Positions 33,035 to 56,531 of a DNA stretch of 64,000 nt are shown piece after piece. The position numbers were made by a program, and so were the translations under genes. The notes below the pieces were generated by a model. It was given only the letters and a program-made list of their open reading frames with translations. It was not told where the DNA came from and ran no database searches. The number at the start of each line of letters is the position of its first letter. Positions within the stretch are counted from its first letter, which is position 1. Origin of the DNA: Octopus sinensis (Eukaryota); assembly GCF_006345805.1 (NCBI RefSeq), contig NC_043003.1, positions 2,542,001-2,606,000 of the forward strand, in the 5' to 3' direction.

Positions 33035-33261
33035 GATTTTACACTAAGTATGTTTTTATATCAGCGATGGTGTGAGCACCGTTTAATGTTTCGAGGAATC
33101 GTAAACACGACTTATTTAGAACTCGATGCAAATGCTATAAAAGAAATATGGGTTCCAGACTTGTATTTCCCAAATGAAAAACGTTCAAATTTCCATGAAG
33201 TCACAATGGCAAATAGGATGCTGCGAATAAACGAAGAGGGAAATACGCTTTTCTCGATGAG
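33035..33261 (+). CDS. Cys-loop receptor exon (loops D, A, E); GlyR/GluCl-like
   Basis: ttgcag|GATTTT...ATGAG|gtacat; 227 nt, phase 0 to 2. DFTLSMFLYQRW...IWVPDLYFPNEK...NRMLRI...LFSMR matches the GlyR/GABA-A ligand-binding-domain motifs. Confidence 0.95.
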
Positions 33262-33680
33262 GTACATATCGCTTGCTTTATTTGTCTTTATTTTATGCAA
33301 AATACTTGTTGTACTGCATGCATTGCGCATAACATTTTATCAAAATCAATCCGATCCACGAAACTAATCGTAAAATGCCGATGTATAGAACTATTTATAT
33401 ACAAGAAAATCGAAACTAGGTGTAATAGTTTTAACAGAAACTTATAAAAGAGGTCTGTGTTTTGAGCAAAGCCCTATGTTTTTGACACAAAATATTATAG
33501 CTAGTACTATTCCATGTGACAAATGTTATATACAACGGTATTTTAACCTGTCTGTTTCAAGTGTGTATATTAATTTAATTCTAGTTTCACAAGCCTTCAC
33601 CCAAATCATTAAATGTTTTGTTAACTAATTTCTATAACGGAGCAATCATTTTCAGCTTAGCTCAGAATATCCAAGAGTAG

Positions 33681-33726
33681 TCGCCACTGAGAAGACCGAA
33701 TCGATCGAAACGCCTGTGTCTGGTGA
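33681..33726 (+). ncRNA. Degenerate type I hammerhead motif
   Basis: TCGCCA CTGAGAA GACC-GAATC-GATC GAAA C-GCCTGT-G TC TGGTGA: 6-bp stem I and GUC triplet; the core deviates by one base. Confidence 0.5.
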
Positions 33727-36132
33727 TCTCCTAATCTTCTGAGCAAAGCCCCGTGTTATGATATTAAGTCTCTTTGAGATGTTTCTCTGAGATAATATGT
33801 CACAGCTGGTGCCGTTCCACGATTGTATTTACATTATAAATGTCATAAACACTTGTATTTCTATCTAAGAGTGTCCAAGTTTAATTGCTCGTAAATTTAA
33901 TTGTTCGTAAAATGAATTGTTTGTAAAATGTGTTTTCTAGGAAATAAATATCAGGAAATTCATAAATGAAAAATGAATCCAATTTTCAAGATAAGGAAAT
34001 TTTAAAAAGCCGTTTACTGATACTTAAGCAAACTAATCATTAAATTCTTTTCTAGGATCACATGGTACAGATCACGTGTCAGATTTATGCAAATGTTTTA
34101 TTTAAAATTCCAGAGACACAAAAATAACGAAGTAACTCGACCAAATGTTTTTGTAATTATATCGTATGTTAAAAGTTACATAACAAAACGCAATCAACAT
34201 TGTTAATTAGTTAATTTAGCAATTTAGTTAGCATAGTAAATTAGACAGGCTTTAGACGACCCAAGTGTATTTAACTGACATACCGTCGAGGGAACGGTTA
34301 AGGTCAGTGAGAATTCCGAAAATTTCTCTGTGTGTGTATGTGTATATGTGTGTGTGTGCTTATGTGTGTGAATGTGTATGTATGTGTATGTATGTATGTA
34401 TATATGTATGCATGTATGTATGCCTGTACGTATGTACGTACGTATGTACGTACGTATGTATGTATGTATGTACGTACGTACGTATGTATGTGTATGTATG
34501 TATGTATGTGTGTGTATGTGTGTATGTATGTATGTATGTATGTATGTATGTATGTATGTATGCATGTGTGTATGTATGTATGTGTGTATGTATGTATGGA
34601 TATATGTATGTATGTATGTATGGATATATGTATGTATGTATGTATGTATGTATGTAATGTATGTACGTATGTATGTGTGTGTGTATGTGTGTATGTATGT
34701 ATGTATGTATGTATGTATGTATGTGTGTATGTATGCATGCATCAGAGGCGATTCCAGGTCATCAGTGTCACATAGACTCATCTCAAATTTCGCATAAGAC
34801 ACATGCCTTCTCGAAGAATTTCACATTTTCCCGCTATATTTCTTGCCTCAAATGGCTTCTTTTTTTTATACCTAGCACTATGTCCTTCTCCATTTCTAAG
34901 TTAGGGGTTAAAATAAAGAAACCCTGCAAAGCACAACTGATCTTTGCACACAGAAGCACAGAATAACAGCAATCAAATAACGACAGGTGAGCGCACAACA
35001 AGCATCAGCGATCCGACTGTCACCTGTAACTCTTGACATGAGATACCAGTTAGTCTTCTACACCCACCAGGCTCGTTCGTATTAACCCGATTTGCTGGAT
35101 AAATTTTTGTTTCTTTAAGAATATTATAGATCGAAAATTTTTCATAGATTGGAATTTAAATCCTGATCTCTAAAGAAAGTTATTGTTTCTAGAAAACGCT
35201 AAATTTGAATTACTTTTAATTTTTACGATTATAGATAACAGCTCGGGCTGTAATTTCTGAGCCCGAGTCAGGCGTGTGTGAACGATGTCGAAAGACCGCC
35301 TGCTACGAATGATATTTTTCGATGCTGGGCACCTCTAAGACGACCACCAGTCGCTGAACGAGAATAAATGGACTGTGACCAGGCTCAATAAAAGGAGCCA
35401 GAGTTATTGGTCGCAATTACATACTTGAAGTCACAATGTTGGCTGAAATGAAATCAGATTGCAAATACACGTTCACTTTACTAAAGTTATACTCGAACAG
35501 CCCGAGTGCCGGAGTCACCACTGGTATGCATGCATGTATGTGTGTGTGTGTGTGTGTGTGTGGTGTGTGTGTGTGTGTGTGTGTGTGTGTGGAAGATGAA
35601 GGACCAAAGAAACAAGACCAAAAGGGTTTGAATATTTTATTGGGCATGCAGTGATCACGTGTCTCGTGGCTACGTCGGAAGGGGCCGTACGGTGGACGAA
35701 ATTGAAGGGATTAAAGAAAGACGCCTTCCTCTTCAGTCAAGCCCTCTTCATCATTTTAAAGCAAAGTGAGGATGGAGGGAGAAGTGTTCTCTTCCCCCCT
35801 TGAGCTTCTAAAATGGTTTGGGTGAATGGACTTACTTTAAGAATGCGCCTGTAGAATGGAGAACAGCATTTAGGAGAGGAGGGCTTGTCCTTTGGGGATC
35901 AGGGTGGTTCTGGATCCGTAGAGTTCCTTGATTGGCTCTTGTTGGAGGGGTGATCCCCCCCCCAGGAGGACTTCATCACAGATATGCGTTTATATGTTTG
36001 GTACGCTATGGACACATTTTTTACCGCATCTCCCCTTCCTCTCCCTTTCACCACCTTATCTTTTACGGAAATCCCTGCACAAATTGTAAACTGTCCCTCT
36101 CGCCTGATGCCCCACCGGCAAATAACATAAAT

Positions 36133-54479: not shown

Positions 54480-55480
54480 CGTCGAGATACCTTTTCCAGT
54501 TTTCTTGTATATATTTCATGAAGAAGTTTTCATTTCAAAAAAGCTACCTTGACGATTGCTTCATTTTATGGAATGATAGTATTGAATAATTAAAAGAATT
54601 TGAAGCAATCCTCAATGGAATTAATAAAAAAATATACAATTCACCATGGAAGATTGCCGTAACTAACGGCCATTTTTAGACATCGTAATAACGGAAGTCA
54701 ATGACTAAATAAGGATGGGCATTTGCCATAAACCTACGAACTCCAGACAATGTTTCCATTCAATTCATGCCACCCAAGACATACCTGAATGAATGTCACC
54801 TATAATCTAGCCAAAATCATCTGCACAATGGTATCCGATGCAAACTTTCGTAAAATAAGGAAAACTGACGAATACACGCTTTACGGGGATTATCCACCAT
54901 CCTTGGCCGATAATGGAGAACAACGAACCAAAAAATTCAATATTCAGGAACTTAGACAAACAAAAAGAAATGCATCAGAATTGGAAGTCCTACCATATAT
55001 TTCCACCAGCAATTCCAAAAACAACGAAGCCTCTAGCATTATATTCCATAACATACCGTTACTGAAAAGTGGCCCAGGGCTGAACCATATCCTTCAAACA
55101 CGTGCCGTCATAAAAAGCAAAAGACAATCCAAATCAAGGAAAAATTTGCTAACAAAGACCAAAGTTGGCAGACTAACAACAGGATTAACAGTAAAAAAAA
55201 AAAAAAAAGGTATTTGTTTAATTCTGTAAGAAGAATCGGAAATCCATTTGAATCAAGGAAAATTTGTCAAAAACGAAAAAACAATGCCTTCACCTTTGCA
55301 TCTAAAGCTCAAATATACAAGAACATGCTCAGGATGTGGAGAAAATTGCATAGGATGAACCGGGGGGGGGTCCTTTAGATAGTGTATGACTCAGCATAGA
55401 TCACAAATCAAAATACAAGGACACAGACAACTAGGACTCAGTGAACATATACACGCACGTGCAGTTAAACAACTAAAATC
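54480..55480 (+). mobile_element. Decayed Penelope-like element (RT to GIY-YIG)
   Basis: SYLDDCFILWN, IQFTME, PFLDI, HKPT, SCHPRH, RQSK...NLLTK and an H...SEHI remnant; many stops and frameshifts. Confidence 0.8.
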
Positions 55481-56136
55481 TACGATTTCCCCTTATAGTA
55501 ATTGAGCGATGACACAGTTCAACAAAGAAACAATCTTCAAAACCAAATACCAACCATTTCTAAATACCTGTGGCAGAAGAAGGGAGAAAACAACTGCTAG
55601 TCTACTACAACCTCTGCTAAAATAGTAACAAGTACTACCACCAGTAGTTAGGCTGACAAAACAATGACTACTACAGCCACTAACACTGCTACTACTGCTG
55701 CTGTTATTACGACCATGACCCAGCAGCAACAAGGAGGAAATGTAATACCAGCACTATGTGGTTTTTGCAGCAAAAACATGTGAATTTCTAGAACTAAAAT
55801 CATGAAAGATTAATTTAATTTAATAGCAATGAAATTTTCCTTTTATTTTAACATGACTACGTCGTCTATTGTAAATGACTGAAACCGGTAGCATATTTTG
55901 ATAAAAGTATAAATACTTTCTTTGTTTTATCCATGATTTAATTCACAAAGTGTATATTTTTATTTGTATGTATGTATGTGTACGTACATATGTCTGCATT
56001 AACCCTGAAAGTGCTATCCATGTAATATTTCACCTGTTCATTTCTTCCATTTTATTTCAGAGAGAAATTATTTGTTGAATTCATTTCTTATTCTTTAAAT
56101 GCTATTTATTTTCTCTCTTTCTTGTTTATTTTTCAG

Positions 56137-56531
56137 GCAACCATAGCTGTCTTCAAGCAAATTTTCACCTGACCCGTAGTGTCGGTTATTATGTTGTCCA
56201 AATGTACATCCCAACAATACTCATTGTCGTCCTGTCTTGGTTGTCCTTTTGGTTGAATGTCGACTCGGTGCCCGGCCGTATATCTCTTGGTGTTCTCACA
56301 GTTCTCACAACAACCACTCAAATTTCATCTGTCAATGCAACTTTGCCAAGAGTCTCTTATACAAAGGCCATAGATATCTGGATGGCAACCTGTCTGCTAT
56401 TCGTATTCGCTGCATTACTTGAATTTGCAGTTGCCAATATCTTAAGCAGGAAAGAAACAATGAATGGATTTTTCTTTCAACATGTTTACAGCAGAGATGG
56501 TAAACAAACCCACACCAATTACAAATCGGAG
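56137..56531 (+). CDS. Cys-loop receptor exon: end of loop C, M1, M2, M3 and start of the intracellular loop
   Basis: tttcag|GCAACC; [38 protein letters not shown]...[18 protein letters not shown]...[32 protein letters not shown]. Donor taken as GAG|gtaaat; an alternative GATG|gtaaac lies at 56499/56500. Confidence 0.95.

Follow-up and report, generated by a model that had tools for sequence, protein, structure and literature searches.

A zeta-like subunit of the glycine receptor branch with a non-canonical agonist pocket in Octopus sinensis

What ligand opens a Cys-loop receptor that belongs to the glycine receptor branch and has lost several of the residues with which an amino acid agonist is bound? 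This question is raised by a gene of Octopus sinensis in the stretch of DNA analyzed here, a window of 64,000 nucleotides (nt) from contig NC_043003.1 (positions 2,542,001 to 2,606,000 of the forward strand; assembly GCF_006345805.1). A reading made from the letters alone (hereafter the sequence-only reading) had placed four exons between 33035 and 56531, and these outer coordinates proved exact. All exon borders are AG/GT, and the joined exons give 843 nt in frame that encode a 281-residue peptide, 100% identical to residues 81-361 of a 420-residue annotated Octopus protein, CAI9725134.1 (P0001 in our sequence set), 'glycine receptor subunit alpha-1-like isoform X3 [Octopus vulgaris]'. Residue numbers such as Tyr89 and His232 are those of this full-length protein throughout. 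In our judgement the gene rather probably encodes a cephalopod zeta-like chloride-channel subunit with a conserved physiological role, for which neither glycine nor glutamate, bound in the canonical pose, is a likely ligand. The replacements Tyr89, Glu229, His232 and Ala182, together with the lack of both arginines used by glutamate-gated chloride channels (GluCls), make these two ligands unlikely, and strong purifying selection combined with conservation from octopus to cuttlefish points to a conserved role rather than to a fast-evolving sensory receptor.

Fold, pore and agonist pocket

The assignment of the product to the anion-type Cys-loop receptors of the glycine receptor (GlyR) branch, as the sequence-only reading had it, is supported concordantly by Pfam, solved relatives, phylogeny and Foldseek. 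The 281-residue peptide matches the Pfam families Neur_chan_LBD (2e-32) and Neur_chan_memb (1.2e-29), and its best solved relatives in HMMER searches are GlyR alpha1, alpha2 and alpha3 (about 1e-84, 41-42% identity), followed by the weaker matches GlyR beta (about 1e-64 to 1e-65) and GABA-A receptor beta (about 1e-61). An AlphaFold2 model (mean pLDDT 73.8) comprises an alpha1 helix, a beta-sandwich and four transmembrane helices, predicted at residues 245-268, 274-298, 307-347 and 385-419, and its top 50 Foldseek matches consist of GlyR chains only (TM-score TMt 0.7-0.8, E about 1e-34). Taken together, Pfam and AlphaFold2 indicate that an extracellular ligand-binding domain precedes a membrane domain of four helices, the last of which (M4) is encoded beyond the window. 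The likeness to the vertebrate receptors GLRA1-4, the best match in both sequence and fold, extends to the domain order, the Cys-loop, the loop C disulfide, a similar anion-type start of M2, and the flanks of loops D and E, which are still GlyR-like (F-L-x-Q-x-W and F-S-M-R).

The Cys-loop (CKMNLRNFPFDKQVC), encoded by exon 5, is formed by C163 (37534-37536) and C177 (37576-37578) with 13 residues in between. Membrane helices M1 (56181-56252), M2 (56268-56342) and M3 (56367-56456) are all encoded by exon 7, and M2 opens with the anion-type motif P275-G276-R277 (56271-56279) and has no glutamate at -1'. Judged by its sequence, the gene product is a GlyR-branch Cys-loop subunit with an anion-type pore entrance and a predicted selectivity to match. 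The pore departs from that of GLRA1-4 in having Gly at -1', Leu at 6' and Asn at 19', positions at which GlyR alpha1 carries Ala, Thr and Arg, respectively, and the M3-M4 loop is very short. Alignments reveal the 6' leucine to be common to many lophotrochozoan GlyR-like subunits, and it would be expected to alter picrotoxin sensitivity and conductance.

The agonist pocket was compared with that of human GlyR alpha1 by HMMER alignment and by MAFFT/hmmalign family alignments, and every pocket substitution previously listed from the letters, including a one-residue insertion in loop C, holds in both. In loop D, FLRQQW has become FLYQRW, with Tyr89 (TAT, 33059-33061) replacing R65. In loop B, ESFGY has become ASFSY, with Ala182 (37591-37593) replacing E157 and Ser185 (47975-47977) replacing G160. 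The conserved Leu-Pro of the loop F motif LPQF is replaced by Asp209-Thr210 (48047-48052), giving DTQF. Loop C, CTKHYNTGKFTC in GlyR alpha1, reads CVNFVRQEGNHSC in the query and is one residue longer. Its first half, C222 VNFVRQE, is encoded by exon 6 and contains Arg227, at or near the position of Y202, and Glu229 (48107-48109) in place of T204; its end, GNHSC, is encoded by exon 7 and contains His232 (56142-56144) in place of F207, with C234 closing the loop.

The weight of these substitutions is best seen against the amino acid agonist (AAA) motif described by Lynagh et al. 2015 (PMC4338433), which is common to agonist-binding GlyR, GABA-A and GluCl subunits and consists of aromatic residues in loops A, B and C, a threonine in loop C, an arginine in loop D and a serine in loop E. 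According to the same work, glutamate recognition requires an additional arginine, located in loop G in ecdysozoans and in loop A in lophotrochozoans; in AVR-14B, the loop G arginine R76 sits 19 residues before the loop D arginine R95, and mutations of the AAA motif, in a set that includes R95A, cut agonist potency greatly (PMC4338433). Anionic mollusc subunits without the AAA motif were already pointed out there in 2015 (PMC4338433). The Octopus protein fails at three of the motif's six positions: the loop D arginine is Tyr89, invariant across the cephalopod orthologues, the loop C threonine is Glu229 and the loop C aromatic is His232. The other positions are kept (Tyr124/Phe125 in loop A, Phe184/Tyr186 in loop B, and Ser154, at 33254-33256, within LFSMR of loop E). 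Neither GluCl arginine is present. The lophotrochozoan position in loop A (FF-R-NEK) is occupied by Pro126 (33170-33172) of DLYFPNEK, and the ecdysozoan position in loop G by Asp70, as counted in ungapped register from Tyr89 and encoded by exon 3 outside the window. With the AAA motif failed and both GluCl arginines missing, canonical gating by glycine or glutamate is unlikely, and the sequence-only reading was reasonable on this point; on the failed motif, the protein should not be classed as a glycine receptor, nor as a GluCl, despite its database name.

The rarity of this pocket was assessed with an exhaustive HMMER search of 1.84 billion representative sequences, which returned 17,249 relatives with E <= 0.001, of which 1,486 reach E <= 1e-30. 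An alignment of 151 rows was built from the best 150 representatives of 50%-identity clusters and the human reference. Arginine occupies the loop D position in 120 of the 151 rows, and tyrosine is found there in the query alone; neither ASFSY in loop B nor DTQF in loop F occurs in any other of the aligned rows.

A mollusc-only clade under purifying selection

The ancestry of the gene was examined with neighbour-joining trees (200 bootstraps, 254-255 columns), the second of which (78 sequences, 254 columns) has nematode AVR-14 GluCl as the outgroup and also holds AAA-type, loop-A-Arg, 'class 2', annelid, nemertean, vertebrate and nematode GluCl sequences. Both trees place the query inside a mollusc-only zeta-like clade, the PGR/GNHSC clade, with a support of 195/200 in the first tree and 200/200 with the AVR-14 outgroup, and 200/200 replicates unite the cephalopod sequences in a monophyletic group. 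Among the members of this clade is the Lymnaea stagnalis 'GABA-gated chloride-ion channel/receptor zeta subunit' (UniProt Q08861, CAA50492.1), which is, like the query, functionally uncharacterised in the searchable literature. Within the clade the chiton branches first and the cephalopods next, the latter as sister to several gastropod and bivalve subfamilies; the nearest relatives outside the cephalopods are gastropod, bivalve and chiton proteins with 49-58% identity.

The marks of the clade are all present in the query, namely GNHSC at the tip of loop C, PGR at the start of M2 and a proline in loop A (FFPNEK/YFPNEK), and the loss of the loop D arginine is likewise shared with the Lymnaea zeta subunit and most other members. 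At that position most of the clade has no arginine and usually has histidine (LLHLxW), whereas the cephalopods have tyrosine (FLYQRW). The gastropod and bivalve members further differ from the query by Met or Glu at the E157 position, most of them keep the proline of LPQF (some bivalves have NQF or RQF), and they fall into several subfamilies as compared with the one cephalopod gene, in which the flanks of loops D and E are more GlyR-like than in other members. Because the loss of the loop D arginine and the gain of the loop C histidine are found in most of the clade, they are old features, and the changes specific to cephalopods come down to Tyr89, Ala182 and Asp209-Thr210 only. As tyrosine codons lie one base from histidine and two bases from arginine, a path from R through H to Y in loop D would be the economical reading, and it is offered as an inference only.

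The description of the gene as an orphan with a rebuilt pocket is thereby modified: the pocket is indeed non-canonical and conserved, but the gene falls with Lymnaea zeta in a mollusc-only clade (200/200) and most of the rebuilding is old. On the evidence of these trees, the gene is the cephalopod member of an old, uncharacterised, mollusc-wide family and not an isolated orphan.

The tree also separates the query from the GluCls (Aplysia-like, Schistosoma-like and AVR-14/GLC-type), which belong to the same anionic GlyR/GluCl branch. These channels depend on the AAA motif together with an arginine in either loop A or loop G, whereas the query has Pro126 and Asp70 at these positions, has no loop D arginine and lies outside the GluCl clades. 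AAA-type mollusc, annelid and nemertean subunits fall outside both mollusc clades that are devoid of the loop D arginine, as do mollusc subunits combining the AAA motif with a loop A arginine. The latter look like Aplysia-type GluCls by Lynagh's rule, and near neighbours with the full motif and the loop A arginine include Gigantopelta P0356 and Babylonia P0396 (DTFFRNE). The second of the two non-Arg clades is a mollusc-wide class (non-AAA, 200/200 support) that contains a second Octopus subunit of the GlyR branch, the 435-residue O. sinensis 'glycine receptor subunit alpha-2-like' (P0339), encoded outside the window. P0339 also lacks the loop D arginine and reads FITQEW, LQSFTYS, CTSHNKDKNFTC and, in M2, PAR. 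No canonical AAA-type Octopus subunit was found among the best 120 matches to an annelid canonical subunit.

Conservation within the cephalopods was examined across the orthologues from O. bimaculoides (XP_014773572.1, 98% identical), Sepia pharaonis (CAE1284566.1), Sepia esculenta and one further decapodiform. Loops A and D are identical in all cephalopod orthologues, and loops B and C each vary at one flanking residue (three Octopus, two Sepia and another decapodiform sequence). Key pocket codons vary synonymously, with TAT or TAC for Tyr89 and CAT or CAC for His232, and the window differs from the O. vulgaris coding sequence by three synonymous and zero non-synonymous changes in 843 nt. The ratio of non-synonymous to synonymous substitution rates (dN/dS; Nei-Gojobori) was computed for the decapodiform pair only, Sepia esculenta against the other decapodiform cDNA, because the synonymous rate (dS) between Octopus and Sepia is saturated. 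The resulting values, which are rough since dS is about 0.9-1.1 for the first three, are 0.086 for the whole coding sequence, 0.040 for the extracellular domain and 0.009 for M1-M3, with 0.28 for the M3-M4 loop. The gene is under strong purifying selection. It is also single-copy, with one gene per species in 90%-identity clusters, and the next match after the cephalopod orthologues falls to 58% identity.

Evidence for transcription comes from the cuttlefish. The sequence-only reading had named the lack of a spliced transcript as a finding that would refute it, and this does not apply, at least for the orthologue. In 66 blocks of SRA-run assemblies, the full Sepia esculenta open reading frame stands on contigs about 2 kb long that have no introns, and the runs that were traced are whole-larva RNA-seq.

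Gene structure and the rest of the window

The four exons in the window are coding exons 4 to 7 of eight, all on the plus strand. Exon 4 (33035..33261, 227 nt, residues 81-156), identified by its AG/GT borders, its translation and the 100% protein match, carries loops D, A and E. Exon 5 (37515..37597, 83 nt) carries the Cys-loop and the start of loop B, and ends at the donor GTAAGT at 37598; this is the donor of the annotated protein (QVAS/FSY), a choice settled by the 100% identity of the peptide. Exon 6 (47973..48110, 138 nt) completes loop B (FSYT) and contributes loop F as well as the first half of loop C, and exon 7 (56137..56531, 395 nt) the end of loop C, M1, M2, M3 and the start of the M3-M4 loop.

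The complete gene was rebuilt in a 106-kb comparison locus of O. vulgaris (L001, OX597820.1:3428777-3534611), where eight coding exons of 101/71/68/227/83/138/395/180 nt with internal borders that are all AG/GT translate into the annotated protein and span about 80 kb from start codon to stop codon. The 68/227/83/138-nt pattern recalls the gene structure of GlyR and GABA-A receptor subunits. Exons 1-3 lie at L001 10001-10101, 44715-44785 and 47731-47798, and exon 8, which encodes M4 (residues 362-420), lies at L001 89875-90054, corresponding to about 1 kb past the window end. Residues 1-80 and 362-420 have no 6-mer match in any of the six frames of the window, and tblastn likewise recovers neither. 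These N-terminal and M4 exons are missing because of an assembly gap and the window end, respectively. The gap, 100 N at 28076..28175, conceals some 49 kb of the locus, coding exons 1-3 among it: positions 25222-27899 of the window align to L001 1-2646 and the sequence from 28176 onward to L001 51646 onward, so that the flanks of the gap are about 49 kb apart in O. vulgaris (L001 2646 vs 51646). The earlier claim of a complete extracellular domain plus M1-M3 is therefore correct for M1-M3, but the extracellular domain is short by the 80 residues that comprise the signal peptide, the alpha1 helix, beta1 and loop G. The same gap, by removing exons 1-3, explains why the O. sinensis RefSeq model XP_029639301.2 is truncated at its N-terminus, with 335 residues and a start at Met86 (MFLYQRW).

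The introns of the window are collinear with those of O. vulgaris at about 90-98% identity, mostly 94-97%. The 3' part of intron 3 (28176..33034, +) is collinear with L001 51646-57318 at 87-96% identity, and most of intron 7 (56532..64000, +) is contained in the window, position 63997 corresponding to L001 88875. A further O. vulgaris isoform of 397 residues (P0121) departs after '...GIWY' and stops before M4; this form without the fourth membrane helix is probably an annotation or splicing artefact.

Several other features of the window were noted. Its GC content is about 29-45%, and microsatellites and short tandem arrays are abundant, for example at 29100-30250, 34300-34780, 38950-39350, 36100-36640 and 47720-47970; they include TG/TA-type arrays (translated as CMYV...), and long trinucleotide runs adjoin the exon 6 acceptor. 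Long stop-free stretches, all on the minus strand, occur in the upstream region and the introns (9985-10371, 9358-9747, 2892-3833, 43544-44631 and 50884-51402). A Pfam scan of these long frames gave one sub-threshold RVT_1 match (8.4e-06, 26 bits; cut-off 29.6) and no match for the remainder, and they are probably decayed retroelements. Finally, 41791-41976 (+) shows a weak tblastn match to a GlyR-like M2-M3 (E 0.07-0.9) with an internal stop; as it lies inside intron 5 and out of exon order, it is probably due to chance.

Candidate ligands and competing explanations

If the favored reading of a zeta-like chloride-channel subunit with a conserved role is right, five subunits, alone or with a partner subunit, would assemble into a chloride-permeable channel that an extracellular ligand would open at the subunit interface. 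The likeliest class would be a ligand without an alpha-carboxylate, either a cationic transmitter, of the amine type or another, or else protons or a metal that would act through His232, and the physiological role would probably be neuronal inhibition. A stronger form of this proposal, in which the channel is gated by a transmitter or ion class new to the mollusc GlyR branch (a monoamine, another cationic molecule, protons, or a metal via His232), is less likely than not, and we put it forward only tentatively.

A precedent for a departure from amino acids is provided by Alv-a1-pHCl (Alpo7) of Alvinella pompejana, a lophotrochozoan anion channel of the GlyR branch whose agonist is protons. In contrast to the query, it has a near-canonical pocket (IYFRQTW, ESYSY and CTKEYKTGSF in the supplementary alignment of Courtney et al.), and it therefore offers no model for the query pocket. 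Orthology of the query to a known pH-gated channel was considered and rejected, as the pocket of Alv-a1-pHCl differs.

Several observations weigh against the favored reading or temper it. Loop C has gained an arginine, Arg227, which could in principle stand in for the one lost from loop D, and the motif is an imperfect guide to the ligand, given that Alv-a1-pHCl is gated by protons with a near-canonical pocket. The binding loops are invariant at 61 of 74 positions as compared with 113 of 148 for the rest of the extracellular domain (p = 0.39); being no more conserved than the rest of the domain, they do not allow conservation to single out the pocket. The 6' leucine of M2 is atypical of a homomeric GlyR-type pore. 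The trees are neighbour-joining on 254-255 columns rather than maximum likelihood. No Octopus transcript contig for this protein cluster was found in the SRA-derived collection, and expression may be very low in the Octopus tissues sequenced so far. Furthermore, the searchable literature contains no functional report on this protein or on members of its clade, and searches for the Lymnaea zeta subunit, cephalopod or mollusc GlyR-like orphans, the protein accessions and sucker expression gave nothing on this gene.

The 6' leucine acquires a different meaning if the product is an accessory subunit, that is, a non-agonist-binding or half-site subunit that forms channels together with another member of the GlyR branch and supplies them with a degenerate interface and with pore properties, as vertebrate GlyR beta does. 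Vertebrate GlyR beta has phenylalanine at 6', and the query has a bulky hydrophobic residue at the same position, has lost three of the six AAA positions, and is accompanied in Octopus by at least one other GlyR-branch subunit (P0339). The Lymnaea zeta subunit, moreover, is said to have been cloned by Hutton et al. in 1993 as a GABA-A-receptor-like polypeptide, reportedly with homomeric function undemonstrated. However, P0339 is the only other Octopus subunit of this branch that was found, and with FITQEW it too is devoid of the loop D arginine, which leaves no canonical partner identified; the pocket is invariant across coleoids, which is unexpected for an unused site, though the whole extracellular domain is equally constrained. 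We regard an accessory role as unlikely, yet worth keeping in view. Gating by a small amino acid (glycine, GABA, taurine, beta-alanine or glutamate) through re-arranged contacts, for instance with Arg227 doing the work of the loop D arginine, appears improbable. The AAA positions retained in loops A, B and E and the presence of Arg227 are compatible with it, and the carboxylate-binding arginine has shifted between faces of the site, loop A as against loop G, as pentameric ligand-gated ion channels evolved (PMC4338433). The AVR-14B mutations described above, with their strong loss of agonist potency (PMC4338433), argue in the opposite direction, as do the absence of any GluCl-type arginine (Pro126, Asp70) and Glu229, which occupies the site where Thr204 hydrogen-bonds the carboxylate.

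A more adventurous proposal, made by the sequence-only reading, was that the gene represents a repurposing for environmental chemicals on the chloride-channel branch, parallel to the chemotactile receptors of octopus and squid. These receptors are cation-permeable, and van Giesen in 2020 and Albertin in 2015 are said to have described them as a lineage-specific multigene expansion. The chemotactile receptors (CRT1, CRB1 and relatives) originate from the nicotinic acetylcholine receptor branch, are gated by terpenes and bitter compounds, and have, like the query, lost the signature neurotransmitter-binding motif of Cys-loop receptors (PMC10338036). Beyond this shared loss the two part company, and by its sequence the query looks like neither a cation channel of the nicotinic branch nor part of a multigene expansion. 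It is a multi-exon, single-copy gene of the GlyR branch with 1:1 orthologues from octopus to cuttlefish; no second Cys-loop gene or tandem paralogue was found in the 64-kb window or in the 106-kb O. vulgaris locus; the extracellular-domain dN/dS of 0.04 is the opposite of what a diversifying family would be expected to display; an anion-type PGR pore would hyperpolarise most cells and not excite them; and the clade is older than the cephalopods. The chemosensory proposal is thus not supported, and we consider it very improbable. Decay of the gene copy is harder still to credit, and we regard a non-functional copy as extremely improbable. The truncated RefSeq model of 335 residues, the isoform P0121 without M4 and the lack of Octopus transcript contigs might each be read as signs of decay, but the truncation is accounted for by the assembly gap, the reading frame is intact with canonical internal splice sites throughout in O. 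vulgaris, the two Octopus species differ by no non-synonymous change against three synonymous ones, the decapodiform dN/dS is 0.086, and a full-length Sepia mRNA exists.

The favored reading, a zeta-like chloride-channel subunit with a ligand other than canonically bound glycine or glutamate, makes the gene a well-defined, though not unprecedented, target for ligand discovery, as the cephalopod-specific member of an uncharacterised clade. A 2025 preprint describes a screen of 41 O. vulgaris Cys-loop genes against 18 ligands that yielded a dopamine-gated cation channel and an acetylcholine-gated anion channel (bioRxiv 10.1101/2025.04.02.646353); the available supplements of that screen, which cover only the DopC and AChRB genes, reference ligands and hybridization chain reaction (HCR) probes, report no result for this gene. 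Cephalopod brains employ ionotropic receptors with unexpected ligands, and the gene described here, single-copy, highly conserved and transcribed, is a clean prospect for another such receptor on the GlyR branch. Its annotation also carries a lesson, in that the name 'glycine receptor subunit alpha-1-like' in this clade does not imply glycine sensitivity. Identification of the ligand would offer a first way into a mollusc-wide receptor family, of which the earliest deposited member comes from Lymnaea (Q08861). Were a transmitter or ion class new to the mollusc GlyR branch to prove responsible, this would reveal a new fast inhibitory signalling channel in the cephalopod nervous system and, by extension, would give all of the mollusc-wide PGR/GNHSC family a class of ligand.

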